Sequence record: MT446416.1
Direction: 5' to 3' (one strand)
DNA: 64,000 nucleotides
Below are positions 7,241-22,660 of this stretch, piece by piece. The position numbers and the translations under genes were made by a program. The notes below the pieces were generated by a model. The model had not been told where the DNA came from, ran no database searches, and was given only the letters and a program-made list of their open reading frames with translations. Every line of letters begins with the position of its first letter. The first letter of the stretch is position 1.

Positions 7241-7242
7241 TT

Positions 7243-8340: not shown

Positions 8341-8348
8341 AATCTTTT

Positions 8349-8933: not shown

Positions 8934-8980
8934 TGCATTTACTCCTTGAATTGATGAAACTATATTACAGTACTTTACTA

Positions 8981-9208
8981 TCAATGGCAACTACTTTTTT
9001 TAACATTAACGGCGTGGATCACTTCCTTAGTGTTTTTAGTACTGAATACTTTTGCCGCTCCTTGTTCGACCGTGATGCGATAGCGACCATTAACATCAAC
9101 CATATTAATAAAGTCCGGCGTGCTGAATGGTGTTGTTTTACATTTCAGTACGGTTAACAGTTCCACCAGCGATGTAGTTTATTTGATACGTTTTTCTAAA
9201 GTAATCAT
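8981..9208 (-). pseudogene. Early gene interrupted by an in-frame TAA at codon 10
   Basis: ATG at 9208 with a GGGG RBS reads MITLEKRIK*TTSLVELL..., TAA at 9179-9181, in frame with track ORF 8981..9166. Confidence 0.55.
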
Positions 9209-9262
9209 TTTGTTTTCCCCCGTGTTGGTATATATACATAGTACTAAAACATTTGAGTACTG

Positions 9263-9517
9263 TCAACGTGAAATTCTTTTAATAGCAGTATTATACTGCT
9301 GGTGCTCATACAAACTAATTTTACCAGTACTCTCGATAACGATTCTATTGTTAGTGTCTACATCGATAACACGCAGTTTACCGTTGCTTAACTTCCTAGG
9401 TAATATGTTACCATTAATAAACTCATTAGCAAGCTGTACGGCCTTTGTGATGATTCTCTGAGGGGCTTTATAGTGTACCCGCAAGATATTATCTTTAGAT
9501 AGTTGTACCTTAATCAT
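9263..9517 (-). CDS. Hypothetical early protein
   Basis: ORF with RBS. Confidence 0.7.
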   Translation of the reverse strand: MIKVQLSKDNILRVHYKAPQRIITKAVQLANEFINGNILPRKLSNGKLRVIDVDTNNRIVIESTGKISLYEHQQYNTAIKRISR

Positions 9518-9579
9518 TTTAGTTTATCCTATAAAAAAAGCGGGAACTGATCCCGCCGTGTTGTTAGTACTGCTAGGTA

Positions 9580-9984
9580 TTAGATAACCTGTCGGCGTTT
9601 ACTGAATACAGTAACACTGTTTCCCTTGCGGTCGTGGCGGATCTCTCGTTGGTTGCGAATCAGTACACTTGGACGCTTCAAGTTAGCCAGATGATCCGCG
9701 TGAGTCCATGCATTCGAATTTACGGAAACTTTAATATCAGAACCCGCGACGAATTCATCTTGAGCGTTAAGAATTGCCGCCAGTTCTTCAGCTTGTTTTT
9801 GTTCTGCTGCTGTCAGTACTGGCTCAGGTGAATTCACAATATCAGAGATTTCTTTGAACTGTACGGCCCAGCGTTGGCCTTTCGGTGCATCTTTGCCCAT
9901 GTCTTTAAATAGCTCACCTTCCTCGCGTGCAACAATACGGGCAGCTTCACGGGTAGCGTAGAATTTAGTAATCATGGTATACAT
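9580..9984 (-). CDS. Hypothetical early protein, paralog of 21493..21756
   Basis: Shared TRE.AR..AR, FKDMG, RWAV and HDRKGN.VTV. Confidence 0.8.
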   Translation of the reverse strand: MYTMITKFYATREAARIVAREEGELFKDMGKDAPKGQRWAVQFKEISDIVNSPEPVLTAAEQKQAEELAAILNAQDEFVAGSDIKVSVNSNAWTHADHLANLKRPSVLIRNQREIRHDRKGNSVTVFSKRRQVI

Positions 9985-10070
9985 CCTATTAGTTAAGTTA
10001 GTACTACAAGCGAGAGTCTATTATAAAGTACTATCTGTGTAATGTCAAATAGTACTTTAAATGGATTCTA

Positions 10071-10394
10071 TTACATGTCTTTCTTACGTTTTACATCGTA
10101 GTAGCGAACTGTTATTTCTTTGTTAATCTCTTTTTCGATGCGGTGAATAACTTTTTCTTTCGGGTTGAAACCTATAACGGTTTCTTTAATGATCTCCAAA
10201 CCAGTGTATTCGCCTTGCGTACCGTAACCGTATGTAAAGGTTTCGTGTCCCAGGTCTTCCCAGCGGTCGCCAATTAACGCAGACACGTAGCAAGAGTGGT
10301 AAGTATTGCCGTTCCGATCAGTCCAGCGATTAACTTTAATGTCAAAGGAGGTTACAATTTTCAGTTCTACTTTCTGGGTAAGGATCATAGCCAT
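10071..10394 (-). CDS. Hypothetical early protein, paralog of 16639..16983
   Basis: Shared RW...GNTY.S, F.YGYG and DVKRKKD. Confidence 0.8.
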   Translation of the reverse strand: MAMILTQKVELKIVTSFDIKVNRWTDRNGNTYHSCYVSALIGDRWEDLGHETFTYGYGTQGEYTGLEIIKETVIGFNPKEKVIHRIEKEINKEITVRYYDVKRKKDM

Positions 10395-10481
10395 TTTTAT
10401 TTCTCTCTTTTAGTTAGGAGGGGAACCATTCCCCTCACTTGATGTAATCTATTATACAGTACTAAGATACTTTGTCAATAC

Positions 10482-10757
10482 TTAAGTATTGTAAATGTCG
10501 TGAATAGTGATAAAGTTTTTACGACCGTAAACCTGTAAATCGGTATCAATGTAGTGTTTATCTAGTACATCCTCGACGCTTAACGCGGTGTCGTGGATAT
10601 CTTCGTAGAATTGAGGATCTACAATCTTGCTTAAGTCATCCGGTGTTAACTTATCGTTAAGCCATTGCACCGCCTGGATATCTGCTTCACGTTTCCAGTC
10701 TTGCAGGTTAGTAGTCAGTACTTGCTCGATTTCGTTAGCTGTCAGTAGAATCCGCAT
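10482..10757 (-). CDS. Hypothetical acidic early protein
   Basis: ORF with an AAGGA RBS and its own promoter. Confidence 0.75.
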   Translation of the reverse strand: MRILLTANEIEQVLTTNLQDWKREADIQAVQWLNDKLTPDDLSKIVDPQFYEDIHDTALSVEDVLDKHYIDTDLQVYGRKNFITIHDIYNT

Positions 10758-10825
10758 TTTAATGTTTCCTTATCAGTGGTTGATGTAAGTATTATACTCG
10801 TTTACTTTCTATTGTCAATCTTTTT

Positions 10826-10901
10826 ATCAGGGGAGTTTTTCGTATGTCTTACTCCTGGACTACTTAACGGGGTTACTTGTTTCGTTCCCCCGTCCTGATG
10901 T
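10826..10901 (-). ncRNA. Structured RNA, family 2 (14-nt-loop hairpin), copy 1
   Basis: Promoter-driven, no ORF; GGAGT-AAGACATACGAAAA-ACTCC hairpin at 10832-10855; near-identical to 20819-20895. Confidence 0.55.
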
Positions 10902-10975
10902 AAAACATTATACTTGATTTTAAGTACAATGCAAGTACTTTTTAAAAATAGTTTTCAGTACTAGCCACCAGCAAA

Positions 10976-11062
10976 TAATAGATACATTTATGCACCCTGT
11001 GGGCTGATTTGTTTCTATGCGTATATAATAGCAAAGGGACTTACCGGAGTCAATCCCTTTTT
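10976..11062 (-). ncRNA. Small-RNA-like unit, family 1, copy 3
   Basis: Promoter, then GCCCACAGGGTGCATAAATGTATCTA; Chi site just downstream (10965). Confidence 0.5.
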
Positions 11063-11071
11063 TAATTATTT

Positions 11072-11221
11072 TTAAACTTGTTTTGGGTTGCGATATGTGA
11101 TAGCGTTCGGGTACATTTGTTTAATGTTATTCCATGCCTGGTTAACATTATAACCACTTGAGCGAATCAGTTGGTTACTACCGACACCTTGAAACACTAC
11201 TTCGAATAAGAATTCTTTCAT
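11072..11221 (-). CDS. Small hypothetical protein (49 aa)
   Basis: Hand translation MKEFLFEVVFQG...; ATGA-coupled to the upstream gene. Confidence 0.65.
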   Translation of the reverse strand: MKEFLFEVVFQGVGSNQLIRSSGYNVNQAWNNIKQMYPNAITYRNPKQV

Positions 11222-11391
11222 GCTTTCACCTCGCGATCTGCTTTACCTTTACGCCACGCTGTTGCTAATTGTTCGCGTTGCCATAAGTCGAGTGATACGT
11301 AAAGTTTTGCATTATCACCCTTCGGATATTCGCCAGTAGTACCAATCCGATAAAACAGATCTTTCAGTACTGTCAATTCTACCTGGATCAT
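11218..11391 (-). CDS. Small hypothetical early protein
   Basis: Start corrected to MIQVELT. Confidence 0.7.
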   Translation of the reverse strand: MIQVELTVLKDLFYRIGTTGEYPKGDNAKLYVSLDLWQREQLATAWRKGKADREVKA

Positions 11392-11477
11392 TATACTTTC
11401 CTCTTTGTTAGGAGGGGAACTATTCCCCTCTCGATATAAAACATTATACACTTTATTCAGTACTGTGCAAGTACTTT

Positions 11478-11690
11478 TTAATCTTTCAGCCAATGATCCT
11501 GAATGAATTTTTCACCAAATCCCTGTTTCATGGATTCTAACAGGCGTTCACGGTGAGCGTTGGCGAATTGCTCCGTACTATGCGTTACACCTGGTTGATA
11601 TCTGGATTCACCATTGGGGGCGATGTATTGCACATCCCACGGTTTAGCGTTAGTATCAGACCATTTACGAACGATTAGTTGACCTTGCAT
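11478..11690 (-). CDS. Hypothetical early protein
   Basis: ORF with its own promoter module. Confidence 0.75.
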   Translation of the reverse strand: MQGQLIVRKWSDTNAKPWDVQYIAPNGESRYQPGVTHSTEQFANAHRERLLESMKQGFGEKFIQDHWLKD

Positions 11691-11776
11691 TTTTCTTTCC
11701 TCTTAGTGGGGAGAATCATTTCTCCCCTTCATGTAAACTATTATACAGTACTATAATCTATTGTCCAGTACTTTTT

Positions 11777-11965
11777 TTACAGTTTATGAATCAATTCTTT
11801 ATCTAAGCGATAGCGTACATTATTAATAGTAACGGCATTGTTTTTAATGCTACGCTGTACTGGTCCACCAGCAATAACAAACGTTGCCTTATTACCCCGA
11901 ACAATGATAGCACTTCCTGGATTGCTGTATTCATCTTGTACTAAAATACTTGATAAGTTTTCCAT
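11777..11965 (-). CDS. Hypothetical early protein
   Basis: ORF with its own promoter module. Confidence 0.75.
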   Translation of the reverse strand: MENLSSILVQDEYSNPGSAIIVRGNKATFVIAGGPVQRSIKNNAVTINNVRYRLDKELIHKL

Positions 11966-12052
11966 TTTTATTTCCTCTTAGTAGGGGAAGATGTTTCCCC
12001 TTGATGTAATACAGTATACACTATCTTTCAGTACTGTCAATACTTTTTAGTA

Positions 12053-12409
12053 TTACGATAAAATCATGATAGGATATTCACTATCGATCAGTACTTCGAA
12101 TCCAAAACCTTCGTACCATTCTTTAAGATTAAAGGCGTTATCTTCTCCCGTATCGCATTCTAAAATGATACAATCGGAATCATCAGCGGCATCAATAAAG
12201 GCATTCATTAATTCGTTACCTTCACCATTGCCCCGACTATCAGGATCAACATAAAGAGAATCAATAAACGCTACACGGTCATAATCAAGATCCGGTGCAA
12301 TGATTCCACGTTTTTCAAACCAGTACTGCAATTGTGCTACTTTGCCCTGTACTTGATAGCCAGTGATCTCGCCATTGTCAGTAGTACGCGTGATATGTTG
12401 TATTCCCAT
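12053..12409 (-). CDS. GNAT-family acetyltransferase
   Basis: Motif A: IDSLYVDPDSRGNGEGNELM; C-terminal WYEGFGF. Confidence 0.85.
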   Translation of the reverse strand: MGIQHITRTTDNGEITGYQVQGKVAQLQYWFEKRGIIAPDLDYDRVAFIDSLYVDPDSRGNGEGNELMNAFIDAADDSDCIILECDTGEDNAFNLKEWYEGFGFEVLIDSEYPIMILS

Positions 12410-12472
12410 GATTTCTATCCTCAGTTAAGATATAAAATATTATACACTATCTTTCAGTACTGTCAATACTTT

Positions 12473-12730
12473 TTATCTCATAGATCTATGCCAACAATTA
12501 CGCGGGGGACGTTTAAAAGTACTATCATGATCCTCCTGGCAAGTTATGCAGTACATGCACCCTACAACGGCCTGGCGTCGATTCTCAGGGATTAAATCAC
12601 CGCAATCATGACAATGTGTTAGTGATTCTCTTTGTGCGTTAATTTGCTTTCTAGCGTGGTTTACGGCGGCCTGAATCACTGCGTTAATCTCGTCTTGTTC
12701 GGCCCCGTCTTTCGCGAATCCTACTGCCAT
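12473..12730 (-). CDS. ybiI: DksA/TraR C4 zinc-finger protein (YbiI-like)
   Basis: MAVGFAKD..., ESLTHCHDCGDLIPENRRQA...CMYCITCQE; closely follows the YbiI/TraR pattern. Confidence 0.85.
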   Translation of the reverse strand: MAVGFAKDGAEQDEINAVIQAAVNHARKQINAQRESLTHCHDCGDLIPENRRQAVVGCMYCITCQEDHDSTFKRPPRNCWHRSMR

Positions 12731-13065
12731 TATTTTAACCTCATTATAAAAATACTATATTACTGTAATGCTACAATAATACTACTAGTACTAATCTTAT
12801 TCAAACCACATGATACTACATATCCACCAGCATTACCACGGATAGTAACGCCTTTGTACTGTCTATATAAATTCAACTGCGTTTATTGCCTTTGATCAAG
12901 AATTGATCAGAATTATACGCCTTATGCTAAATTGATCCAGTACTTTTTGATCATTTATTGATCAATATTATACAGTTACATTTGTGCACCCTATGGGTTG
13001 GTGACGTTCTCGTCTTGATGTAAGTATTATGCCAGTACTGGATGATATTGTCAATAGATTATTTT
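12731..13065 (-). other. Non-coding AT-rich stretch with a family-1 unit, five TTGATC sites and a Chi site
   Basis: GATC at 12894, 12905, 12934, 12949 and 12960; ACCCATAGGGTGCAC motif at ~12985-12999 behind TTGACA-17-CATAAT; CCACCAGC at 12824. Confidence 0.6.
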
Positions 13066-13256
13066 AACTTTTTTCTGTCATTGATTAATGCTTTCAGTAC
13101 TATACTAATGATTTGCAATGATTCATCAATGACTATAAAATTATTATCTTTCATTAGATGATAGTTACCATTGATATTATATTCTAATGAGTACTGTTTA
13201 CGTTTAATTTTTGATAATGTTTCTATTTGTTTTTGTACTGATTTCATGCTAATCAT
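13059..13256 (-). CDS. Hypothetical protein
   Basis: ORF track. Confidence 0.6.
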   Translation of the reverse strand: MISMKSVQKQIETLSKIKRKQYSLEYNINGNYHLMKDNNFIVIDESLQIISIVLKALINDRKKLK

Positions 13257-13361
13257 TGTTAAACGTCCTGTAACGCATTCTAACGATATAAACGGTTTAG
13301 TACTGGCATTGTATAGGGTAAATGATTAAAGCCCACCAGCGTTAACTAGTGGGCTATAATC

Positions 13362-13505
13362 TTACATCTTGCGGATAATCTTAACAGTATCTTTCACCGA
13401 TTTACCGTCTTGCTGGCATTGCTCGATCATCGCGTATTGTTCTGCGGTCAGATCCTCGCCAGTTTTTGCCAGTACTGCATCGATGAATGAATCCAGTGCG
13501 ATCAT
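13362..13505 (-). CDS. Small hypothetical protein (47 aa)
   Basis: Hand translation MIALDSFIDAVLAKTGE...; own promoter; GCCCAC hairpin terminator at ~13331-13354. Confidence 0.65.
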   Translation of the reverse strand: MIALDSFIDAVLAKTGEDLTAEQYAMIEQCQQDGKSVKDTVKIIRKM

Positions 13506-13595
13506 TTTATTTCTCTCTTAGGTTAAGTTAACTACTGTTTATAAAACTTATTATACAGTACTATCAATCTATGTCAATAGTACTGGTAATATATT

Positions 13596-13847
13596 TTATA
13601 CGGGCTGTACCGCCAGTGTATTATCTGTTATAACCTGGTACATAACTTTTACAGTACTGTATGCTTCTTTGATGCTTAGCCCTTGAACTACAGGGACTTC
13701 ATCAGCACCACCAGGAAGGGTACGCGAGATAACCAGTTTATCATTTTCTGAATGTACACAGTAACGATAGGTCATCTGGCGACGGGCTAACGCATCATTC
13801 AAGTACTGTAAGTGGCGTTCTACGTTCTCGCGAGTAATACGGGTCAT
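13596..13847 (-). CDS. Hypothetical early protein
   Basis: Start corrected to MTRITRE (AAGGA RBS). Confidence 0.75.
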   Translation of the reverse strand: MTRITRENVERHLQYLNDALARRQMTYRYCVHSENDKLVISRTLPGGADEVPVVQGLSIKEAYSTVKVMYQVITDNTLAVQPV

Positions 13848-13930
13848 GATTGTTTCCTTAATAGTGTGGACTTGATAAAACTTATTATACAGTACTATCA
13901 ATCTTTGTCAATAGTACTGTGATAATATTT

Positions 13931-14143
13931 TTAGTTAATGATAGTCAGTGTAAAATTGTAATCCCCTGCCTGGTATAGTACTTTGTCGCCGAACGTACCA
14001 ACACGTTTCATATTGCAATAGATACCCATAACACTTTTTACATCTTTGATATTCCGAACGCCTGTGATATCCTTGTTGAAATTTTCATGATCAGAAAATA
14101 AAACTTGTTTTGCATTTTTCAGTACAGTGCAGATATTAGCCAT
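13931..14143 (-). CDS. Hypothetical early protein
   Basis: ORF with promoter module. Confidence 0.75.
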   Translation of the reverse strand: MANICTVLKNAKQVLFSDHENFNKDITGVRNIKDVKSVMGIYCNMKRVGTFGDKVLYQAGDYNFTLTIIN

Positions 14144-14237
14144 TTTGTTTTCTCTTTGTTAGTGGGGAGAATCATTTCTCCCCTTGATGTAACTTATTAT
14201 ACAGTACTATAATCTATTGTCAAACTATTTTTTAATA

Positions 14238-14576
14238 TTATTCGAAATCTTCTGGACCGGACTGATAATCATCTTCACCGTATGCACTTTCTAACTTCTC
14301 GCCAGTGTGATCATCAGTTAGTGAGTCATCCTCATAGTTCACGTCTACGCCCGTGATGTAAAACTGGCTATCGTCTGGATCATTGAAATTAATTTTCTGA
14401 ATGTTTACAATAACTGTATTGATTCCCAGGACACCGCCATCAGCCGTTACAAAGTACTGATAGTTTTCACAACCGCCTGAATTGAAACCGTAATTAATTT
14501 CGGCCCGACCATCATTTAAACGCAGTGCCTGGGCGATGATTTCGTTTTCAAAGTTAGATTGAGCGATTGAGATCAT
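14238..14576 (-). CDS. Acidic hypothetical phage protein
   Basis: YFVTADGG...VNYEDDSL...ESAYG; the pattern resembles an uncharacterised phage family (from memory). Confidence 0.75.
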   Translation of the reverse strand: MISIAQSNFENEIIAQALRLNDGRAEINYGFNSGGCENYQYFVTADGGVLGINTVIVNIQKINFNDPDDSQFYITGVDVNYEDDSLTDDHTGEKLESAYGEDDYQSGPEDFE

Positions 14577-14640
14577 TTTGTAGTTCCTTGTTTGCTTAAG
14601 ATGGGACTATTATATAATAGCCCCGTTGTGTTGTCTAGTA

Positions 14641-15108
14641 CTATTTCACGTTAATTTCAAAGTACTGCTCTTTGATGTTTTCCTGTTGGTAAATCTCGTT
14701 TAATGCTTTAAGATCTAACACCTGTTTACCTGCGGCCCGAATATACTTGTTAAGAGTCGCTAACAGCTTCTCAGGCGTGTTTGTAGTCTTACGTGTTGGG
14801 ATCTTATCGTGTCCCATAGCGTAGTACTGTTTACGTGGAATAGTACTGATAACGCTGCGGTACGGTTCCATGATCAGCTTGTCTGTGTATTCGTCGCTAT
14901 CCCCGAACTTCATACCGTGGATCGCAAAGGTCATCATCATGCGGTCGTTATCGCGGATATTGTGGGGGCAATCGGCAAGCTCGCGAGTCAGTGACATAGT
15001 GATCCCCACGTCGCCACCCAGCGGTAAAGGTCGGGCGATAAAGAAACCGTTAGGGAATACTTTCAGGAAGTTTTCTTGTACTGCTGCGACGAATTCGATG
15101 CTATTCAT
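14641..15108 (-). CDS. Hypothetical early protein
   Basis: 155-aa ORF with promoter module. Confidence 0.8.
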   Translation of the reverse strand: MNSIEFVAAVQENFLKVFPNGFFIARPLPLGGDVGITMSLTRELADCPHNIRDNDRMMMTFAIHGMKFGDSDEYTDKLIMEPYRSVISTIPRKQYYAMGHDKIPTRKTTNTPEKLLATLNKYIRAAGKQVLDLKALNEIYQQENIKEQYFEINVK

Positions 15109-15228
15109 AATTCATTTCCTTAATTAGTGGGGGAAGTTGTTTCCCCTCTCGATGAAAAACATTATACGCCAATTGAGATAGTTTGCAAGTACTTTTTAAA
15201 AATAGTTTTCAGTACTCAATACTTATAT

Positions 15229-15320
15229 AATAGATACACTTATGCACCCGGTGGGCTAGTGAGCTATCTCTCAATGAATATATAATAGCAAAATGGCTGA
15301 CCGAAGTCAACCACTTTTTT
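15229..15320 (-). ncRNA. Small-RNA-like unit, family 1, behind a UUCG terminator-promoter cassette
   Basis: GGTTGACTTCGGTCAGCC cassette, TATTAT, then GCCCACCGGGTGCATAAGTGTATCTA. Confidence 0.5.
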
Positions 15321-15323
15321 CAT

Positions 15324-15464
15324 TTATTTTTTAGCTTTTAGAATCGCCGCCTTTCGCGTCATGCCTTGCTTAATGTACTCCTTTACTTTCGCTTTACGTG
15401 CTTTCGCTTTATTTGCTTTCGTAAATGCCGAACAACTTTTATAGTTTAAACCTGTTGGATTCAT
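15324..15464 (-). CDS. 46-aa Lys/Ala-rich basic protein
   Basis: Hand translation MNPTGLNYKSCSAFTKANKAKARKAKVKEYIKQGMTRKAAILKAKK. Confidence 0.65.
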   Translation of the reverse strand: MNPTGLNYKSCSAFTKANKAKARKAKVKEYIKQGMTRKAAILKAKK

Positions 15465-15703
15465 TTAAATCACCATAAAGAATAGATAGGTTACTAACAA
15501 CGCCGCGATCAATGCACCGATCACCGCCGAACTGTAATAAGCAAATGATTTCATTTTTTAGCCTGGAAGTAATGTTTAATTTGTGCGGCGGTCAGTGCAC
15601 AATTTCGCAGGAAGTTTTCTGTATAACTGCGGCGAGTACTGAAAGAAAATTGACCTTTGCCGTTGCCGATAGTAACATCAAACCGAGCGTTGTATTGTTT
15701 CAT
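15465..15703 (-). CDS. Two small coupled ORFs (50 aa at 15551..15703; 29-aa hydrophobic peptide at 15465..15554)
   Basis: Hand translation; GGAG RBS and ATGA coupling. Confidence 0.55.
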
Positions 15704-15774
15704 TTTGATTCTCCTTGTATCAGGGAGGAACCATTTCCCCCCCCTCTATGTAAAACATTATACAGTACTGAAAA

Positions 15775-15984
15775 CTAATTGCAAGTATTATTTTCTAAAA
15801 AATGATTGTATGCTGAATCAACCACTCTTTCGATAACATACGCCAACGGCCCGTATCCAACTACATGACTACAATAGAAAGGACTACGATTAGAATCATC
15901 GTATGCAAATACTTTTTCAGGATCTGCATCAATCACATACATATTAACCTCTAAGATGTCGATCTTATCCTGTACAGTAAGCAT
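15775..15984 (-). CDS. Hypothetical protein
   Basis: Start corrected to MLTVQDK, coupled to the upstream stop. Confidence 0.65.
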   Translation of the reverse strand: MLTVQDKIDILEVNMYVIDADPEKVFAYDDSNRSPFYCSHVVGYGPLAYVIERVVDSAYNHFLENNTCN

Positions 15985-15985
15985 A

Positions 15986-16237
15986 TTAATTACCTTTTTC
16001 AATGTTTGATAATTCTTCCCAAAAACTTCCCGGATCAATATTATCATAATCCCCTGTAACGTCCTGTAACGCATTCTCAGGCTGTTTAACGGCTGGGGTA
16101 GCCATAGCCATTGCCTGGACTTGTTCGACGCTATAACGCTCATATAGGCGGCATTCTTCCGGTGTTAACATAGCATCAATGCGTTTCATTGGTTTAATGA
16201 TGCTTTCAACTTCATTCAGTACTTGATTAACGTTCAT
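15986..16237 (-). CDS. Hypothetical protein
   Basis: GAGG RBS. Confidence 0.7.
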   Translation of the reverse strand: MNVNQVLNEVESIIKPMKRIDAMLTPEECRLYERYSVEQVQAMAMATPAVKQPENALQDVTGDYDNIDPGSFWEELSNIEKGN

Positions 16238-16288
16238 GGTATAATCCTCAATATAAGCGGCCTAAATCGACCGCTAACGATGTTTTGA

Positions 16289-16558
16289 TTAATAGGTGTA
16301 TGGTTGACGCTCAAACAATGATTGCACGTTGTACGCCCCGCTAATGGGCTTCGCTGGTATGTCGATCTTATATTTCTCACGCTTAAAGATAATAAAACGG
16401 CAATTGTTCTTAACATCAAAATTGATTGAACGTTCCAGGAGTTTTCCATCGTGCACAAATACAAGATAACCGCTCGCTACTTGTTTTGTAGTACTGGTTG
16501 CAACCATTGACCGCCTAACATGCGTACCTGCATCGATTAAAGTACTGATATTTTTCAT
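16289..16558 (-). CDS. Hypothetical protein
   Basis: GAGG RBS. Confidence 0.7.
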   Translation of the reverse strand: MKNISTLIDAGTHVRRSMVATSTTKQVASGYLVFVHDGKLLERSINFDVKNNCRFIIFKREKYKIDIPAKPISGAYNVQSLFERQPYTY

Positions 16559-16638
16559 TTTACTATCCTCTTAATTTGATTTAATTTCTTTCCCCTATGC
16601 AGACACTATATCAAAGTATCTGCATAAAGTAAAGCTAA

Positions 16639-16983
16639 TTAAAGATCTTTTTTGCGTTTAACATCAGTTACCGAACTGTAAACAGTGATATTATTGTCAC
16701 GGCAAAAACGGGAAAGATAAGAACCGCGTAAAAACTCTTTACCTTCCATATTAATAACCTTGCTAAATTCTTCCATTGCTACAGTGTCAAAGTGATCCCC
16801 ATAGCCATATTGGAACGGCACGTTTACTACTTCAATAAATTCGCCATTGATTTCAACATCTACCGTTAAAGAGAAATAAGTATTACCATAAGACGCCTGG
16901 AACCAACGCCGGGCTGCAATATGTACAACTTCAACAGAAGACAGGTTGATGTTTTGTGCTGTGATAGTGTTGATGATAGCCAT
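16639..16983 (-). CDS. Hypothetical early protein, paralog of 10071..10394
   Basis: GNTYFS, FQYGYG, DVKRKKDL. Confidence 0.8.
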   Translation of the reverse strand: MAIINTITAQNINLSSVEVVHIAARRWFQASYGNTYFSLTVDVEINGEFIEVVNVPFQYGYGDHFDTVAMEEFSKVINMEGKEFLRGSYLSRFCRDNNITVYSSVTDVKRKKDL

Positions 16984-17065
16984 TTTTTGTTTCCTCTTAG
17001 TGGGGGAACCATTCCCCTTGATGTAATGTATTATACTTTATCTGATTTACTTTGCAAGTACTTTT

Positions 17066-17293
17066 TTAATTTAATTCATCCAGGCAAAGGATACGTTCTA
17101 CACCTAAATCAGTTAAACTAATAGACGGCACTTGATAGGTTTCAATGTATGCTACACTTGCCCACTGACCGAACTCATTAACGGCCCAGGTATCCATTGC
17201 AAAATGCAATTCCGCACCTGCCTTGTTGGTAATGACTGCAACTACTTGTTCGTTGCCAGTAGTACCAGATACGCGAGTAATGATAATAGCCAT
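17066..17293 (-). CDS. Hypothetical early protein
   Basis: Start corrected to MAIIITR. Confidence 0.75.
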   Translation of the reverse strand: MAIIITRVSGTTGNEQVVAVITNKAGAELHFAMDTWAVNEFGQWASVAYIETYQVPSISLTDLGVERILCLDELN

Positions 17294-17539
17294 TGTTTTG
17301 ATTCCTTTTATTTGGAGGGGAAACTGTTTCCCCCCCTCTCGATGTAAAACATTATACGCTAATCTCTTTATAGTGCAAGTACTTTTTATTACTTTTTGCA
17401 AAATACTTTAAACGCTCTCAATCGCTCTATAACAACATTAACGCCACCAGCTAGGGAAATGCATCAGATATTCAGTTTAATGCGTTAGAATCGTTTCTAG
17501 GCGGTGCTGGTGGCCTGGTAAACGGTAAACACAAAAAAT

Positions 17540-17566
17540 CCCACTGTTTAAGGTGGGCTAGTGATT
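17540..17566 (-). terminator. Hairpin terminator; identical 27-bp copy at 18831-18857
   Basis: CCCACTGTTTAAGGTGGGCTAGTGATT, with a U-tract on the - strand. Confidence 0.75.
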
Positions 17567-17580
17567 CAGTACTTTAATTG

Positions 17581-18063
17581 TTATGCTTCAACTTTGCGAT
17601 GAGCTTCGATCCATTCCTCGCGAGTCAATCCGCTTTCTTTGATAGCATCCAGTACTACCGAAATGCAGTTACCACGCACCGGAATCAGATATTCTTCCCC
17701 GTTATCAAGTACTACCGCTACACGTTCTTGAATCCATTTTTTAGGCTTAGACTCCGGCTTATCTTCCCCATACTTAACCGCCAGGGCTTTTTGTGCCATC
17801 TCGGTAACTACTTCCATATCCAGCCCATCTACTACCGCCTGGATACTTTCAATTGTTGCTTGTAGTTCTGCTTCACGGGCCGCCTTCGCTGCTTCAATCT
17901 CTGCCGCTTTATTTGCTTGTAGTTCTTTCGCAGTACTGTAAGCGATGTTAAAATTATTGCGAACCGCTTTCATGGTATCGTTATCCAGTTCAGCCAGGAT
18001 CTCTGCCGCTACGTTAGTTTCATTTGCTACCAGTGCTTTGATGAATGATTTGATGTTAGCCAT
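17581..18063 (-). CDS. Divergent H-NS/StpA-like protein
   Basis: By-eye alignment to E. coli H-NS: NIKSFIKA vs NIRTLRA; VVDGLD...LAVKYG vs IADGID...LAAVKSG; VLDNGE...RGNCISVVLDAIKESGLTREEW vs VDENGE...[22 protein letters not shown]. Confidence 0.6.
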   Translation of the reverse strand: MANIKSFIKALVANETNVAAEILAELDNDTMKAVRNNFNIAYSTAKELQANKAAEIEAAKAAREAELQATIESIQAVVDGLDMEVVTEMAQKALAVKYGEDKPESKPKKWIQERVAVVLDNGEEYLIPVRGNCISVVLDAIKESGLTREEWIEAHRKVEA

Positions 18064-18127
18064 TAGATAAATCCTCAATTAAAGTTTAGTTTACGTTCAT
18101 TAGTGTATCAAAGTTTAATCGACGTGT

Positions 18128-18181
18128 CCAGTTTTTCGTTCGACTTACTGGCGGTCTACTTAGTGTTCCCCGTCTTGATGT
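18128..18181 (-). promoter_or_regulatory. Family-2 14-nt-loop hairpin in the 5' leader of the H-NS-like gene
   Basis: CCAGT-AAGTCGAACGAAAA-ACTGG at 18128-18151; promoter TTGACA(18209-14)...TAGAAT(18187-92). Confidence 0.6.
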
Positions 18182-18214
18182 AATACATTCTACGCCTTTT
18201 TGCGGTAATGTCAA

Positions 18215-18775
18215 CTATCTTTTTGAATATTTTTTAATGTATCTCATAATCGCTGGCGGTGTAGTATTATACCTTTCAGCTAGTATAATTGAGTTAGCAT
18301 CATGTGAATATGGTTTATACAGTTGTATAACTTCGTTAATCTCTTTTTCAGTTAGTTTTGTCCTAACATGCCTTATACCTTCACTCTCATACTTCACTAT
18401 TTTTTTAATAGGCGTTGCGTCGTCATGTATTCCGGTATCGTGTGCGTGTATTATGTTTTCCTTTCCGGTTGACCATTCCAAATTACTGTAATGATTATTA
18501 CTTTTATTTCTATCCTTATGATTAACCTGGACTTTCTTTCTTTTTGTTTTTTGTGCCCATTCTATTTGTGCAGGTGTCGGAGGGGGTAGATAGTTGGATG
18601 CAACCAATCTTTGAACATACTCAAAATGTTTTGATTTGTCTTCTCTTACAAGCGTTAATCTATGATACCCATCAGGGCGAATTGTTGGAGAAAGAATATT
18701 ACTACCATAACGCCTAACATCCCCATACTCACTAATTTCATAAAGGGGATTCTCTTTTAATTGTTTCCATTCCAT
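18215..18775 (-). mobile_element. NUMOD4/HNH homing endonuclease-like gene
   Basis: W..L...P.YEISEYG N-terminus; VQRLVA..; VNHKDRNKSNNHYSNLEW HNH motif. Confidence 0.85.
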
Positions 18776-18856
18776 TGATTTGATCCTTTTAGTTTCTCCT
18801 TTGTATTATATCACACAAAAACAAAAAAAGCCCACTGTTTAAGGTGGGCTAGTGAT

Positions 18857-19156
18857 TTATAAACAGTTAATTACTCCTGTGTGCGTTACTTTCTCAGTAT
18901 CCATTACAGTGACCGAACCGCGTTTAGTACTGGCATCATAATAAATTGTTGTGCTACCTTTCGCATCTTCTTCATGGAACGGGCCGTTTTTAAATGCTTC
19001 TGGCTGGATCTCTAGATCCTTTAAAACAATATCGCCAGTTCTTTCTTCGGTCATTGCAACAGTGCACTGAATGAATTTTTCACTACTTACATCTAACGAC
19101 GCATTAACAGCGAAAGAGGAAACAGATAAAGCCAGGGAGATGATTGCTACTTTCAT
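18857..19156 (-). CDS. Secreted/periplasmic protein
   Basis: MKVAIISLALSVSSFAVNA signal peptide; two Cys; start corrected. Confidence 0.75.
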   Translation of the reverse strand: MKVAIISLALSVSSFAVNASLDVSSEKFIQCTVAMTEERTGDIVLKDLEIQPEAFKNGPFHEEDAKGSTTIYYDASTKRGSVTVMDTEKVTHTGVINCL

Positions 19157-19264
19157 TTGATTATCCTTAGTTACCAGGGGAACCGTTCCCCCTATGTAAA
19201 ACATTATACGCGTTTAAAAACTATTATCAAGTACTTTAATATAAAAGTATTTGAAAAATAATTG

Positions 19265-19392
19265 TTGACAACTGCATCCAGTACTGGCATAATACCTACA
19301 TAAAGACAAAACAGTCTCCAACCCACCGGGTGCATAGATCCGTCTATTAAATGATTCAGTACTGCAAAATAAAGGGGATCAATTGATCCCCT
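19265..19392 (+). ncRNA. Small-RNA-like unit, family 1, + strand
   Basis: TTGACA(19265)-17-CATAAT, motif ACCCACCGGGTGCATAG at 19321, then the GGGGATC-AATT-GATCCCC hairpin at 19374-19391. Confidence 0.55.
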
Positions 19393-19397
19393 CTGTA

Positions 19398-19619
19398 TTA
19401 CTTAGTAAGGTATAAACAGAAGTCACCTTTATTTGCTACGCCGCCAGTGTAACGCGATGAATAGTTAGAAATATCTTGTACTTCTGCTATTACCAGTGTA
19501 TCATCATTCATTTCGTCGCAGAAGCAAACGGCTGGATCTTTTACGCCGATATTGTCGGCATGTTCCCGCATAGATTTAACCAGTGCTTCCAGTTGAGAAA
19601 GAGTAGTGATATTAGCCAT
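19398..19619 (-). CDS. Hypothetical early protein
   Basis: Start corrected to MANITTL. Confidence 0.75.
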   Translation of the reverse strand: MANITTLSQLEALVKSMREHADNIGVKDPAVCFCDEMNDDTLVIAEVQDISNYSSRYTGGVANKGDFCLYLTK

Positions 19620-19809
19620 TGTATTTTCCTCATTACCAGGGAGAACCATTTCTCCCCTCTATGTAAACTATTATACAGTACTGGAAACTAATTGCAAGTA
19701 CTTAATGGTAAGATCCGCAACGGTTGCAGTAGTTTTATTTGTTCGATCATGATGCTTACTCCTGGTTAAAGGCGGGAACCATTCCCCGCCATTGTCACAG
19801 TACTGAATA

Positions 19810-20049
19810 TTACATTCCAACCATTGCAGCACGGATCGCAGTAGTGCTATACTTGAATCCGTCCGGCGTTGTAGTAGTACCGTTGGCTTTTAATCTGCGG
19901 TACATACATTCCGCTGCAATATCTTTCGTTTTACTTTGAGCGATGCAATTTTGAGCAATCCGGTACAATGATTCATCGTTATTGATCCAAAGGCTTACAT
20001 TCCAATGAGTTTTGTTTTTGTGTCCGTTGTAAGTTTTAGTACTAGCCAT
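19810..20049 (-). CDS. Hypothetical early protein, paralog of 21838..22065
   Basis: NGHKN..HWNVSLWINNDESLY shared. Confidence 0.8.
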   Translation of the reverse strand: MASTKTYNGHKNKTHWNVSLWINNDESLYRIAQNCIAQSKTKDIAAECMYRRLKANGTTTTPDGFKYSTTAIRAAMVGM

Positions 20050-20138
20050 TTTTTAATCCTCTTATATAGTGGGGAACTATTCCCCACCTGATGTAAAGTA
20101 TTATACGCTTTTAAACTTAGTTTGCAAGTACTTTTTAA

Positions 20139-20750
20139 TTAATATGCGATTGATTCTACTACGCCATCAATAACATTGAATTGATATTCGTTACCCTCAA
20201 TCAGTGCCGTAATGTTTTCAGTAGTGAATTGATCCTTATATGCATTCTCTAAATCACGGTAAAACTTGCGTGACAATTCACGAATAGTATCAGTTAGTAG
20301 TTTCTCAAGCTCATTAACTAACGTTTCTTGTTTTGAGGTTAAATCAGTGTAAGCCGATTCAATGTACCCGCTTACAGTGTTCTCATGCGAGTAATGGGAG
20401 TGAGATCGCTTTACACTCATCGCCAAATCATCTTCATTCAGCAGGTGACGGATTGAGCGATACTTAGTTAATGCTCTTACCTTGCGTAAAAACTTCACTG
20501 CGTCAACGTGGTCAGTACTGATTGATGCACCGTCACCCTGGGACCAAAAACCACTGAATTGTATTTCAGCGTCATTAATGCCATATTCTGGTAGTACTGT
20601 TTCTTTATAGTATTCAATTTCACTTTCAGAAAAATAATCGTCGTTTGTGTTTTTTTCACGTTCCCGAACCAGTTCGATAGCTGACGTTTTTTGTTCTGCG
20701 TTCAATTCAGAAAAATCCATAACATAAGTAGTAGTAGTGATAGTTTTCAT
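20139..20750 (-). CDS. Conserved acidic phage/ICE-type hypothetical protein
   Basis: FSELNAE..A and FSGFWSQGDGA motifs; function unvalidated. Confidence 0.75.
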   Translation of the reverse strand: MKTITTTTYVMDFSELNAEQKTSAIELVREREKNTNDDYFSESEIEYYKETVLPEYGINDAEIQFSGFWSQGDGASISTDHVDAVKFLRKVRALTKYRSIRHLLNEDDLAMSVKRSHSHYSHENTVSGYIESAYTDLTSKQETLVNELEKLLTDTIRELSRKFYRDLENAYKDQFTTENITALIEGNEYQFNVIDGVVESIAY

Positions 20751-20818
20751 TTTGTAACCCTCATTCAGTAGTTGATGTAAGTATTATACGCTTTTAAAAA
20801 CAATTGTCAAACTATTTT

Positions 20819-20895
20819 ATCAGGGGAGTTTTTCGTATGCCTTACTCCTGGGCTACTCAACGGGGAGTTACTTATTTCGTTCCCCGTCCTGATGT
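20819..20895 (-). ncRNA. Structured RNA, family 2, second standalone copy
   Basis: GGAGT-AAGGCATACGAAAA-ACTCC at 20825-20848, an ACGGGGA/TCCCCGT stem and an ATCAGG/CCTGAT closing stem; no ORF. Confidence 0.55.
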
Positions 20896-20971
20896 AATAC
20901 ATTATACGCCGTTAAACATAGTATGCAAGTACTTTTTAAAATAGTTTTCAGTACTGAATAGTAAAAAGGTA

Positions 20972-21145
20972 TTGACAGCACTATCCAGTACTGGCATAAT
21001 ATACCCCATGACAACAGCTAACCCACCGGGTGCACAATTGTAACTGTACTAAACTACTTTTTCTATAGATACACTCCCGCACCCCGTGGGCCAAATTGTT
21101 CGTTTCAATAGATACATTATGCCAGTACTGACAAAATAAGTCAAT
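20972..21145. ncRNA. Convergent pair of family-1 units
   Basis: + strand: TTGACA(20972)-17-CATAAT, motif at 21021. - strand: TTGACT(~21139-44)-17-CATAAT, motif GCCCACGGGGTGCGGGAGTGTATCTA at ~21066-21091. Confidence 0.5.
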
Positions 21146-21174
21146 ACTGGCAATTGTAAAGATTTGTAAACTAC

Positions 21175-21405
21175 TTATACTGCAATCGCGTCCAGGCTAT
21201 AATAATAATAAGTGCCGTATTGGTGTACTTTATTACCTTTTATTTCAGTACTGAATGAATCCGAACGATTAGCATATGATGTTAATTTAAAGTACTTTGC
21301 TTTACTAATACGTTGCCATACACCGCAGATCCGCTGTAAGTAAGTAGTTTTATTAGTGGTAGTATCTTTTACGGTTTTAACTTCGGTCATATACATATTA
21401 GCCAT
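21175..21405 (-). CDS. Hypothetical early protein
   Basis: Start corrected to MANMYMT. Confidence 0.75.
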   Translation of the reverse strand: MANMYMTEVKTVKDTTTNKTTYLQRICGVWQRISKAKYFKLTSYANRSDSFSTEIKGNKVHQYGTYYYYSLDAIAV

Positions 21406-21492
21406 TTTTTTAATCCTCTTATGTAGTGGGGAAGTATTCCCCATCTGATATAAAGTATTATACGCTTTTAAACTTAGTATGCAAGTACTTTT

Positions 21493-21756
21493 TTATAGTA
21501 CTGCAATCTTTTTAGTACGGTACACGGTAACGCGATTGCCCTTGCGGTCGTGCTTTATTTCTACTACTCGCCGCGATACACTATCAGGACTTTTTAACGC
21601 CGCCAACCAGTACTGTAAAGATCTGGCTTTACTTTGCTTTACTACCGCCCAACGTTTACCACGTTCCGATTGTCCGCCCATATCTTTAAACGTCGCCCCG
21701 TCCAGACGTGCGGCGATCCGTGCTTGTTCACGCGTCACAAAGTACATAATATTCAT
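21493..21756 (-). CDS. Hypothetical early protein, paralog of 9580..9984
   Basis: Shared motifs as noted for 9580..9984. Confidence 0.8.
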   Translation of the reverse strand: MNIMYFVTREQARIAARLDGATFKDMGGQSERGKRWAVVKQSKARSLQYWLAALKSPDSVSRRVVEIKHDRKGNRVTVYRTKKIAVL

Positions 21757-21837
21757 GCTGTTACCCCATCGTTGACGTATAAAAGAAATCTATTATAAAG
21801 TACTATCACCGTGCAATAGTACTTTAAATATATTCTA

Positions 21838-22065
21838 TTACATTCCAACCATCGCCGCACGCACGCTTGATTTGCTATAACGTGCCCCATCAGGCGTGTG
21901 AGTACCTAAAAGGCGTAACATCCGCTCAACCGCTTTATCTCGCGTGTTGGTGCTTTTAATACTTTCCAGGGCCAATTGGTACAGTGATTCATCGTTATTG
22001 ATCCAAAGGCTTACATTCCAATGGTTGTAGTTTTTATGGCCGTTGAAAGTTTTAGTAGTAGTCAT
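21838..22065 (-). CDS. Hypothetical early protein, paralog of 19810..20049
   Basis: WNVSLWINNDESLY. Confidence 0.8.
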   Translation of the reverse strand: MTTTKTFNGHKNYNHWNVSLWINNDESLYQLALESIKSTNTRDKAVERMLRLLGTHTPDGARYSKSSVRAAMVGM

Positions 22066-22158
22066 TTTTAATTCCTCTTAAGTGCAGCGGGAACCATTCC
22101 CGCTCTCGATGTAATACATTATACGCTATTTGATAGTACTGTCAAACTAATTTTTAAC

Positions 22159-22521
22159 TTATTCGTAAATTTTGCCACTGTCAGCCCATACCAGGAAACG
22201 AGGCATATTATCCCATGCATCTTGTTTTAAATTTAAACCGTGTAATACTTCTGTACTTTCCATTCCTGGTACTGGTTTACTATACACCGCGAACATTTCA
22301 CCCATATACTGATAAGCCATCGTTAAATCACTGGCGATCATCTTATGGATCATCGCATCAAGCATCACGGTAGCGGCGTATTGTTCACGCTTAAGCGGCA
22401 ACATTGCAATAAGTCCACGATAAGCTGAAATGTGAATTTTTACCGTTTCTGCCGGAAGATCTTTCATCTCGTCGCGGAAGTTAACCAGGTTAGCAATAAT
22501 TTTATTGATTTGTGTCGCCAT
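22159..22521 (-). CDS. Hypothetical protein, first gene of the early block
   Basis: ORF with promoter module at 22546-22610. Confidence 0.8.
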   Translation of the reverse strand: MATQINKIIANLVNFRDEMKDLPAETVKIHISAYRGLIAMLPLKREQYAATVMLDAMIHKMIASDLTMAYQYMGEMFAVYSKPVPGMESTEVLHGLNLKQDAWDNMPRFLVWADSGKIYE

Positions 22522-22660
22522 CGTTTTTAATCTCTCTTAAAGTGCAGCGGGAACCATTCCCGCTCTCGATGTAATACATTATACGCCGTTAAACATAGTA
22601 TGCAAGTACTTTCTACAAATACTTTTAAAATAGTTTTCTTTCTATATAGGGGAACTATCT

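Follow-up and report, generated by a model that had tools for sequence, protein, structure and literature searches.

Three hairpins in a 121Q/PBECO4-type jumbo coliphage are genuine copies of an apparently undescribed structured RNA, which lies just behind strong early promoters in this phage, in phage T7 and in hundreds of other phages of enteric bacteria. Our best reading is that it is a gene-independent RNA domain that binds a host factor, the binding and the mechanism being inferred only. The window that we analysed is the whole stretch of 64,000 nucleotides from record MT446416.1 and is 99.8% identical to phage TH47. It has exactly three copies, all on the minus strand, of a hairpin with a near-invariant 14-17-nt loop, (A)UAAG-N-C-NN-ACGAAAA(A/C), preceded by an invariant AAGUAG-N-C strand, and each copy lies 10-50 nt behind a sigma70-type promoter.

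Copies of the element in the window and in other phages

The initial annotation had described a conserved loop on a co-varying stem at three sites, and this observation holds. All three sequences were found on the minus strand, namely GGAGU-AAGACAUACGAAAA-ACUCC at 10855->10832, GGAGU-AAGGCAUACGAAAA-ACUCC at 20848->20825 and CCAGU-AAGUCGAACGAAAA-ACUGG at 18151->18128. The pattern AGTAAGNCNNACGAAAAACT gives 3 matches in the window as against 0.29 expected from shuffles, and the longer pattern AGTAGN{8,9}TAAGNCNNACGAAAA also gives 3 as against 0.00 expected. A covariance model of the core finds exactly these three at 50-54 bits, whereas the next hit scores 10.7 bits (relatives score 45-61 bits). 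It may be noted that the ACAUCA start shared by the three copies is generic, since TATAAT-N3-TTACATCA occurs at about 22 promoters in the window, and only GACGGGGAAC is specific to the three copies. The features, all on the minus strand, are as follows.

10907..10934 (-), promoter P1 of copy A: TTGCAT, 16-nt spacer, TATAAT, of the TATAAT-N3-TTACATCA family; the start site is probably A10901.
10826..10901 (-), copy A, three-way-junction subtype: closing helix AUCAGG (10899-10894) with CCUGAU (10831-10826), then hairpin ACGGGGG...CCCCGU, junction UAAGUAGUCC, and the conserved hairpin GGAGU (10855-10851), loop (10850-10837), ACUCC (10836-10832); MFE -23.9 kcal/mol, z = -3.2; 54.3 bits at 10830-10867.
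10791..10818 (-), promoter P2 of copy A: TTGACA, 16-nt spacer, TATAAT, 12 of 12 matches; it drives gene 10757-10482 (91 aa, phrog_14947, unknown function).
18187..18214 (-), promoter of copy B: TTGACA, 16-nt spacer, TAGAAT; the start site is probably A18181.
18121..18181 (-), copy B, short subtype without the extra hairpin: weak closing helix GACG (18174-18171) with CGUC (18124-18121), junction CUAAGUAGACCG, hairpin CCAGU (18151-18147), loop, ACUGG (18132-18128); 53.6 bits at 18126-18163.
18102..18130 (-), possible weak second promoter overlapping the 3' strand of the copy B hairpin: TGGACA, 17-nt spacer, TG-n-TACACT, 9 of 12 matches; it precedes gene 18063-17581 (160 aa, phrog_27871), and a terminator-like site lies at 17557-17540.
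20901..20928 (-), promoter P1 of copy C: TTGCAT, 16-nt spacer, TATAAT; the start site is probably A20895.
20819..20895 (-), copy C, three-way-junction subtype: hairpin GGAGU (20848-20844), loop, ACUCC (20829-20825), with the closing helix 3' strand CCUGAU (20824-20819); z = -2.3; 50.4 bits at 20823-20860.
20783..20810 (-), promoter P2 of copy C: TTGACA, 16-nt spacer, TATAAT, 12 of 12 matches; it drives gene 20750-20139 (203 aa, phrog_5162, unknown function).

The motif is not peculiar to this phage. It occurs between promoters A1 and A2 of T7 and once per genome in at least 501 T7/T3/K1F-like records, on 14 or more host genera. It also occurs in GAP227, in phiEco32-like podoviruses (phiEco32-like contigs), and in rV5-like and phi92-like myoviruses, with 45 jumbo, rV5-like and phi92-like records in all and one copy per genome in the phages of about 145 kb. 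Scans of IMG/VR and metagenomes also contribute to this distribution. All hosts are Enterobacterales or Aeromonas. The element is not a copy of a host sequence: 0 matches were found in 5,426 E. coli genomes, the scan of bacterial genomes gave only chance-level hits, and there is no rrn mimicry.

All copies are in sense orientation behind a promoter. A second promoter starts within -8 to +60 nt of the hairpin end in 60 of 67 instances, as against 5 of 67 in a control window, although in promoter-dense early regions a following promoter may partly be a trivial consequence of where the module was inserted. Copy B and two further copies, designated L112 and L026, lie directly in mRNA leaders with no second promoter, or only a weak one. 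The same P1-element-P2 cassette precedes different genes in TH47, 121Q, muut, EmilieFrey and A73. In T7 the element (550-594) lies upstream of A2 (626) and A3 (750), whereas boxA lies downstream of A3, so all transcripts carry boxA but not the element.

Covariation support for the fold

The GG/CC to CC/GG swap between only two sequence types would be weak evidence alone, but it becomes convincing with 24 distinct cores from other phages. Over 24 distinct cores from all lineages, 90.3% of the hairpin cells are paired as against 33-44% when partners are slid, and 4 of 6 pairs change on both sides. In the T7 type, covariation also supports a second hairpin and a pseudoknot. Here, for 23 distinct sequences and three helices, 93.8% of the cells are paired as against 15-35% when slid, 10 of 15 pairs have double changes, and 0 of 500 shuffles reach the observed values. 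All 5 core pseudoknot pairs are compensated (GUCAA/UUGAC, GAUUAG/CUAAUC, GUCGGU/ACCGAC, GUCAC/GUGAC, GUCAUC/GAUGAC, GCUAA/UUAGC). The two hairpins (HP1 and HP2) show 12 G·U or U·G cells and no unpaired cell, so the fold belongs to the sense strand, which is RNA.

The enclosing helix, examined in eight representative non-T7-type sequences from the other lineages, gives Fisher p = 4e-4, although the closing helix of copy B alone is not significant (p = 0.18). The three-way-junction fold that had been proposed for the two 76-nt units rests on thermodynamics, and within that subtype there is no covariation. For the short subtype the thermodynamic stability of single copies is unremarkable (z = -0.2 to -1.7). 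On examining loop and junction conservation without pattern bias, only UAAG->UCAG and GAAAAA->GAACAA were seen in divergent copies.

Comparison with known RNA elements

A search with Rfam 15 (4227 models, including riboswitches, ribozymes, sRNAs and phage motifs) gave 0 matches at gathering thresholds in the whole window, and at E <= 10 on copy A and on the T7 and phiA1122 leaders only snoRNA/miRNA-type noise appeared. ARAGORN found 0 tRNA or tmRNA genes in the window. We found no published description in open-access text, to which the literature search was confined, and older T7 papers may mention the conserved sequence.

The interpretation in the initial annotation, a protein-binding element such as a nut/put-like antitermination site, a CsrA decoy or a regulator shared between sRNAs and an hns-like leader, is only partly supported. 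A genuine structured RNA element with a conserved loop on a co-varying stem, in the 5' part of early transcripts, is supported, and a recognition surface for a protein or other partner is the natural reading of the loop. That account did not, however, include the extension of the element beyond the hairpin (invariant AAGUAG junction, enclosing helix or pseudoknot), its presence in T7 and several unrelated phage lineages, or the second promoter that nearly always follows.

The CsrB-like decoy is not supported. CsrA sponges such as CsrB/CsrC, non-coding RNAs that titrate a host RNA-binding protein as the element would in this reading, carry many GGA motifs in hairpin loops, whereas here CAGGACG and CAGGAG lie in helices of the three-way-junction subtype only. 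Copy B has CAAGACG and CGCCAG instead, and the GGA motifs are absent from all T7-type copies, whose cores lack GGA in loops, and from most family members. The H-NS-like gene is not supported either, as the 160-aa protein downstream of copy B has no H-NS family hit, only DUF3846 at 18 bits, which is below the cut-off.

A lambda nut site is also not supported. As with lambda/rrn nut-type sites, a hairpin with an A-rich loop (GAAAAA) lies in an untranslated early leader, and in podovirus lineages a boxA identical or nearly identical to rrn boxA lies downstream in the same leader. But boxB is a 5-bp stem with a GNRA-like pentaloop, bound by an N protein, next to boxA, while here the loop is 14-17 nt and the spacing to boxA is 22-400 nt with promoters in between. 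BoxA (CGCTCTTTAACAA-like) matches in the window are at chance level (10 against 8.3 expected), none is near the three copies, and the other myovirus copies also have no boxA.

HK022 put RNA (putL/putR), a cis-acting factor-independent antiterminator, remains a possible analogue and is similarly a structured RNA of about 60-80 nt with two helices, encoded shortly downstream of early promoters used by host RNA polymerase, and by analogy the present element would need no phage-specific protein. Two or three helices behind a promoter are present here, but the topology differs (pseudoknot or closing helix, with long invariant single strands) and there is no detectable sequence relationship. Put is confined to HK022-like temperate phages, while this element is followed by a second promoter and is carried by only some of the equivalent early transcripts.

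The PeSL (promoter-early stem-loop) cassettes of T4-type phages (PMC2839356, PMC4122927) are, like this element, repeated early-promoter units with a stem-loop, found in regions of small variable early genes and in front of different genes in related phages, which is consistent with modular shuffling. PeSL stem-loops, however, are terminator-like and precede the promoter, and no conserved loop or covariation-supported tertiary fold is part of their definition. Here the hairpin is transcribed from P1, no U-tract follows it, the scan lists no terminator at the three sites, and the invariant loops are shared across phage families. Type III antitoxin RNAs and phage pseudo-ToxI decoys are also small pseudoknotted RNAs with conserved A-rich single strands, and phages can encode them as decoys. 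But ToxI-type RNAs are tandem 34-45-nt repeats next to a toxin gene, whereas the present copies are single units separated by 2.7-7.3 kb, without an Rfam match or an adjacent toxin, the neighbouring ORFs being unrelated proteins of unknown function.

Possible roles of the element in early infection

The sequence comparisons show that the three sites belong to a widespread family of structured RNA domains, proposed here as a new family (the early-leader AAGUAG / ACGAAAA element), made at the very start of early transcripts, those synthesised by the host sigma70 RNA polymerase, in virulent phages of enteric bacteria. They also show its make-up, which is a 5-6 bp hairpin with the conserved loop, the invariant strand before it, and a helix between an upstream segment and the segment directly after the hairpin. 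This enclosing helix is a pseudoknot with the loop of a second hairpin in T7-type phages, and the closing stem of a three-way or two-way junction in the jumbo phage. What follows on function, including any binding, is inferred. In this view the helices act as a scaffold presenting the two invariant single-stranded segments to a partner that all these unrelated phages share, most probably a conserved host component such as a protein or RNA polymerase itself. The domain would work independently of whichever gene lies downstream, having its own strong promoter and being nearly always followed by a second promoter that serves the gene; in T7 only A1 transcripts carry it, although A2 and A3 make the same mRNAs. 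We therefore favour, with a probability of roughly 0.5, a self-contained early non-coding RNA module that captures or redirects a host factor, as yet hypothetical, in the first minutes of infection. It may be noted that there is no terminator after the element, so it is not a classical stand-alone sRNA and the RNA continues into the downstream mRNA. A purely cis effect on elongation or stability of the P1 transcripts is the main alternative.

The first such alternative, which we consider unlikely but the best of the remainder, is a modifier of elongation working like put or as an accessory to a boxA/Nus complex. The nascent domain would stay tethered to its polymerase, which would then resist pausing, intrinsic terminators or Rho, so that transcripts from P1 but not from P2 would read through several downstream units. 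The element does lie in the first 100 nt or less of host-polymerase transcripts and is a compact two-helix RNA of about 60-80 nt. A boxA-like TGCTCTTTAACAA lies within 450 nt downstream on the same strand in 33 of 72 instances (controls: 0 of 64 upstream, 0 of 72 antisense). In the window a terminator-like site follows each copy within 0.6-2 kb (18850-18829, 17557-17540 and 9557-9539), and this reading would give a rationale for ORF-less P1 units ahead of P2. Yet only 3 of about 26 early promoters in the terminal repeat carry the element, and boxA is lacking in the myovirus copies. In T7 only one of three equivalent promoters feeds it, while an element needed in cis would be expected downstream of A3, as boxA is. 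Further, E. coli polymerase starting at the A promoters of T7 still terminates at the early terminator TE, which argues against a strong factor-independent antiterminator.

Less likely still is a 5' stabiliser or processing domain, whereby a tightly folded 5' end protects early transcripts from 5'-end-dependent RNase E attack or directs a cleavage separating leader from mRNA. In the jumbo and phiEco32-like copies the enclosing helix starts 2-8 nt from the predicted 5' end, in T7 another hairpin begins at +2, and an AU-rich single strand follows the element (AUAAAAUAGUUU). But a stabiliser needs only a stem, not near-invariant loop and junction sequences kept across five lineages, and transcripts started at P2 lack it.

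A DNA-level feature, either an UP-like or factor-binding region of P2 or a PeSL-like cassette maintained because it mediates recombination and gene shuffling, with no function for the RNA, is improbable. The A-tract lies upstream of a -35 box in 60 of 67 cases, in T7 GAAAAAC occupies about -49 to -43 of A2 (the position of a proximal UP subsite), the cassette precedes different genes in different phages, and 86-97% identical copies are shared between unrelated phage families. However, the distance from the hairpin to the -35 box varies from -3 to +45 nt, so the register is not fixed, and the stems and pseudoknot change sequence but keep complementarity, using G·U pairs only in the sense orientation. 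Five sequences (designated L009, L016, L021, L039 and L171) keep the pseudoknot although no TTGACA overlaps it. Recombination may well spread the cassette, but it does not explain the compensatory changes. A ligand-sensing aptamer or small self-cleaving ribozyme (pistol or twister-type), although the invariant unpaired nucleotides, co-varying helices and H-type pseudoknot would fit, is equally improbable, as there is no Rfam riboswitch or ribozyme match even at E <= 10, no recognisable expression platform (terminator/antiterminator pair or sequestered RBS), a variable distance to the next gene with a promoter intervening, and no reported self-cleavage of T7 A1 transcripts in decades of in vitro study.

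A bolder and rather unlikely possibility, which the evidence nevertheless leaves standing, is a new class of phage non-coding RNA, a compact pseudoknot or junction RNA made in the first seconds of infection from the strongest early promoters. Unrelated virulent phages of Enterobacterales (T7, T3, K1F, phiEco32-like, rV5-like, phi92-like and 121Q-type jumbo phages) would all use it to capture or reprogram the same conserved host factor, which could be RNA polymerase or its elongation factors, an RNase or a broadly distributed immunity component, and it would have spread horizontally as a promoter-plus-RNA module.

T7 is among the best-studied viruses, yet this domain in its A1 leader has no Rfam model and no function in the literature that could be searched. 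The finding explains the odd ORF-less promoter units in the early regions of jumbo and rV5-like phages, and gives annotators a model for a feature that is at present left blank or mis-called as small ORFs, such as K1F gp0.1. An RNA whose single-stranded parts are almost invariant while its helices co-vary, across at least five phage lineages that share essentially no genes, points to one shared host target of early infection, which thereby becomes directly testable in T7.

Genomic setting and detection of the three copies

The region 10000-21500 of the window is 99.8% identical to Escherichia virus TH47 and 88-92% identical to 121Q, PBECO4 and other Asteriusvirus jumbo phages of about 350 kb. 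In the annotated relative vB_Ec-M-J the homologous cluster of about 53 small genes lies inside a 21.5-kb direct terminal repeat at the left genome end, and this cluster has 26 promoters of the type TATAAT-N3-TTACATC, whereas about 22 such promoters were counted in the window, all on the minus strand between 6.6 and 22.6 kb. The copies therefore lie in the early region transcribed by the host polymerase. The features of this region that surround the copies, or bear upon them, are as follows.

Window 6600-22600, minus strand (in vB_Ec-M-J, terminal repeat 1-21525): a dense family of near-consensus sigma70 promoters, TATAAT-N3-TTACATC, many preceded by a palindromic, A/T-rich module AGTACT...AGTACTTGCA, with roughly one promoter per small early gene.
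Window 8130-8240, minus strand: a unit with the same upstream promoter module (AGTACTGAAAACTATTTTAAAAAAGTACTTGCAT...TATAAT) and a 5′ hairpin GAGGGGGAAAUGGUUUCCCCUC, followed by AAGUCCAGGAG used as the Shine-Dalgarno sequence of a gene.
Window 18850-18829: a terminator-like hairpin.
Window 18215-18775, minus strand: an HNH/NUMOD4 homing-endonuclease ORF (186 aa) wedged between that terminator-like hairpin and the promoter of copy B; vB_Ec-M-J has a different small gene at that place, so this looks like a recent mobile insertion.

The observation made in the initial annotation holds, as all three hairpins (copies A, B and C) were found exactly where it had placed them, on the minus strand. Two different sequence patterns each gave 3 matches, against 0.29 and 0.00 expected by chance, and a covariance model of the core gave three hits of 50-54 bits, with nothing else scoring above 10.7 bits. 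Each copy follows a sigma70-type promoter, but the ACAUCA start shared by the copies is a general feature of the promoter family. The two 76-nt units (copies A and C) fold into a three-way junction as the minimum-free-energy structure (z = -3.2 and -2.3), while copy B folds only into the hairpin (z = -0.2). The unit at 8130-8240 is a fourth, partial relative, related to the 5′ half of copies A and C but lacking the conserved hairpin, and the CCAGGAG found there is simply a Shine-Dalgarno sequence.

Known RNA classes and a coding origin were also considered. No tRNA or tmRNA was found, and Rfam searches at gathering and at permissive thresholds, including the hammerhead, pistol, twister and riboswitch models, returned nothing. 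There is no start codon in copy A, and the only ORFs over the sites are mechanical ones that start inside promoters or lie on the other strand. In several T7-like genomes small "hypothetical protein" ORFs are annotated across the element (for example gp0.1 of phage K1F, at 163-378 of the segment examined), and given the covariation pattern these are probably mis-annotations of a non-coding region.

Distribution of the element in other phages

The motif is not confined to this phage. A blastn search with copy A found 45 records, which include phi92-like phages of about 145 kb (Justusliebigvirus: muut, outra, EmilieFrey) and rV5-like phages (Vequintavirinae: A73, W70), at 86-92% identity and with one copy each. 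In those phages the layout is the same, namely promoter, element, AAAATAGTTTGACA...TATAAT and gene, although the downstream genes differ. The segment from the second promoter (P2) through the start of the 91-aa gene (window 10700-10826, minus strand) is almost identical to positions 2580-2700 of the segment from the Justusliebigvirus phage muut, which indicates recent exchange of a promoter-gene module between unrelated phage families. A blastn search with copy B matched 35 nt at the far left end of T7-group Yersinia phages, and in T7 itself UAAGUAGACAGCCUG-AUAAGUCGCACGAAAAA-CAGG lies at 550-588, that is, between the A1 start (498) and the A2 start (626), where it abuts the -35 box of A2. The A2-A3 interval of T7 (297-365 of our T7 segment, about 646-714 of the T7 record) can form a closing helix GUCAACCG/CGGUUGAC whose 3′ strand is the -35 box of A3, which parallels the A1-A2 element, yet the core model does not find a second copy there.

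A first scan of IMG/VR with a pattern fixed on AGT...ACT stems gave 0 hits. A pattern that leaves the stem bases free found 36 IMG/VR loci instead, of which about 33 are real, mostly on contigs of 38-44 kb, plus 121Q and a 366-kb jumbo contig. The same pattern found 103 metagenome stretches, of which about 36 have a stem of 4 bp or more. A blastn search with the T7-type sequence found at least 501 phage records with one copy each, which span Studiervirinae genera and the Melnykvirinae phage GAP227, and whose hosts include Escherichia, Klebsiella, Salmonella, Yersinia, Enterobacter, Shigella, Citrobacter, Serratia, Erwinia, Cronobacter, Kosakonia, Cedecea, Leclercia and Aeromonas. Two 68-kb contigs that carry the element are phiEco32/Kuravirus-like.

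To see if the element mimics a host sequence, bacterial genomes were searched. No blastn match was obtained in 5,426 E. coli genomes, and in the rrnH operon there was no model hit and no complementarity to the invariant strands. The initial transcribed sequence of rrnH P1 (CCATCGACACGGCGG, at 170-200 of the E. coli segment) does resemble that of T7 A1 (CCATCGAGAGGGACACGGCG, at 145-170 of the T7 segment), and the rrn leader also contains the 8-mer ACGAAAAA, but neither is homologous to the element by the model (4.6 bits). The stem-free pattern gave 36 hits in the bacterial genome scan, close to our rough estimate of about 35 chance hits for a collection of that size, and these are in unrelated taxa except for two T7-like contaminants.

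Covariation of the predicted helices and constancy of the single strands

Across 24 distinct cores from all lineages the hairpin stem takes the forms GCCUG/CAGGC, GCCUG/CAGGU, ACCUG/CAGGU, GCUUG/CAAGC, CCUUG/CAAGG, GCCAG/CUGGU, CCAGU/ACUGG, GGAGU/ACUCC and CCUG/CGGG, with 90.3% of cells paired against 33-44% when the partners are slid, and four of six pairs change on both sides. Generic best-helix scoring of the enclosing helix was not discriminating (a mean of 5.4 for real copies against 5.1 for background) and was replaced by counting at fixed columns and by a minimum-free-energy (MFE) test with shuffled upstream sequence. By fixed-column counting, three helices were tested in 23 distinct T7-type sequences, namely a short upstream hairpin (HP1), the conserved hairpin (HP2) and a pseudoknot between the HP1 loop and the 5-6 nt directly after HP2. 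Of the cells, 93.8% were paired against 15-35% when slid, ten of 15 pairs had changes on both sides, and 0 of 500 shuffles reached the observed values. Every one of the five core pseudoknot pairs was compensated (GUCAA/UUGAC, GAUUAG/CUAAUC, GUCGGU/ACCGAC, GUCAC/GUGAC, GUCAUC/GAUGAC and GCUAA/UUAGC), and divergent copies fetched afterwards keep the pseudoknot, for example GUCAAG/CUUGAC in GAP227. In T7 the 3′ strand of the pseudoknot is the -35 box of A2, but lineages with no TTGACA at that place still pair, so the RNA helix is what is conserved. HP1 and HP2 contain 12 G·U or U·G cells and no unpaired cell; as these would be A·C mismatches on the other strand, the fold belongs to the sense transcript.

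In the jumbo, rV5-like and phiEco32-like copies the segment after HP2 pairs instead with a segment near the 5′ end, as listed below, where L112, L113, L038 and L087 (and L026 further on) denote individual non-T7-type sequences.

Copies A and C: AUCAGG/CCUGAU
L112: GGUCAG/CUGACC
L113: GCGACG/CGUUGC
L038: GCGGC/GUCGC
L087: AUCGGUUA/UAAUCGAU
Copy B: GACG/CGUC

The MFE fold recovers the enclosing helix together with HP2 in most of these sequences, although in L087 and L026 the predicted fold shows an enclosing helix but not HP2. Against shuffled upstream sequence the individual p-values are 0.013-0.44 and Fisher's combination gives 4e-4. Within the three-way-junction subtype alone, the seven copies are too similar to show covariation. 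The junction strand AAGUAG-N-C and the loop (A)UAAG-N-C-NN-ACGAAAA(A/C) are invariant in the pattern-derived set by construction, but copies found by blastn, without that constraint, differ only by UAAG to UCAG and GAAAAA to GAACAA. The flanks and helices vary freely.

Transcriptional context and interpretation

The element always lies in sense orientation, 10-60 nt behind a predicted start site. In 60 of 67 distinct instances a sigma70-like promoter begins within -8 to +60 nt of the hairpin end, against 5 of 67 in a control window, with offsets that range from -3 to +45. In podovirus lineages a boxA (TGCTCTTTAACAA with 2 or fewer mismatches) lies within 450 nt downstream in 33 of 72 instances, while the controls give 0 of 64 upstream and 0 of 72 antisense; no myovirus copy has one, and boxA in the window is at chance level. 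In the terminal repeat of vB_Ec-M-J three of about 26 early promoters carry the element, at 3.7, 6.7 and 14.2 kb from the left end. The three downstream genes in the window encode unrelated proteins of unknown function (phrog_14947, phrog_27871 and phrog_5162).

The interpretation offered in the initial annotation is supported only in part. Of its specific proposals, the CsrA decoy is rejected because the GGA motifs are not conserved, and a leader of an H-NS-like gene is not supported, as the gene after copy B shows no H-NS family signal. The element does not fit the defining features of a lambda nut site, whereas a put-like site remains possible. As regards novelty, there is no Rfam family for the element, and no description was found in open-access full text, including papers that print the T7 sequence only as a promoter fragment and a survey of more than ten thousand candidate phage RNAs, although prior mention of the conserved sequence in older subscription literature on T7 cannot be excluded. 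A literature search on the T7 D111 deletion, which might bear on dispensability, yielded nothing usable.

Our comparisons establish a family of sense-strand RNA structures with a covariation-supported hairpin in all lineages, a pseudoknot in the T7 type, a moderately supported enclosing helix elsewhere and two nearly invariant single strands, confined to early host-polymerase transcripts of virulent phages of Enterobacterales and Aeromonas. What the element binds and what it does are, on the other hand, inferred. Since these phage lineages share essentially no genes, and the element is absent from the E. coli genomes searched and from the rrn operon, the common partner is most likely a conserved host component that would be recognised through the invariant strands. 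The element keeps its own promoter, precedes different genes in related phages and occurs once per genome in phages of 40-145 kb, and in T7 it is carried only by A1 transcripts whereas boxA lies downstream of A3. Therefore, its function is probably independent of the downstream gene.

The main rival to the reading that we favour is a put/boxB-like cis action on the transcribing polymerase. A 5′ stabiliser, an aptamer or ribozyme, and a DNA-level promoter or recombination cassette are weaker alternatives. Recombination at these conserved cassettes probably does explain how the module moved between phage families, since copies 86-97% identical occur in unrelated phages. We favour an autonomous early RNA module that, as inferred from sequence comparison alone, would capture or redirect a host factor.
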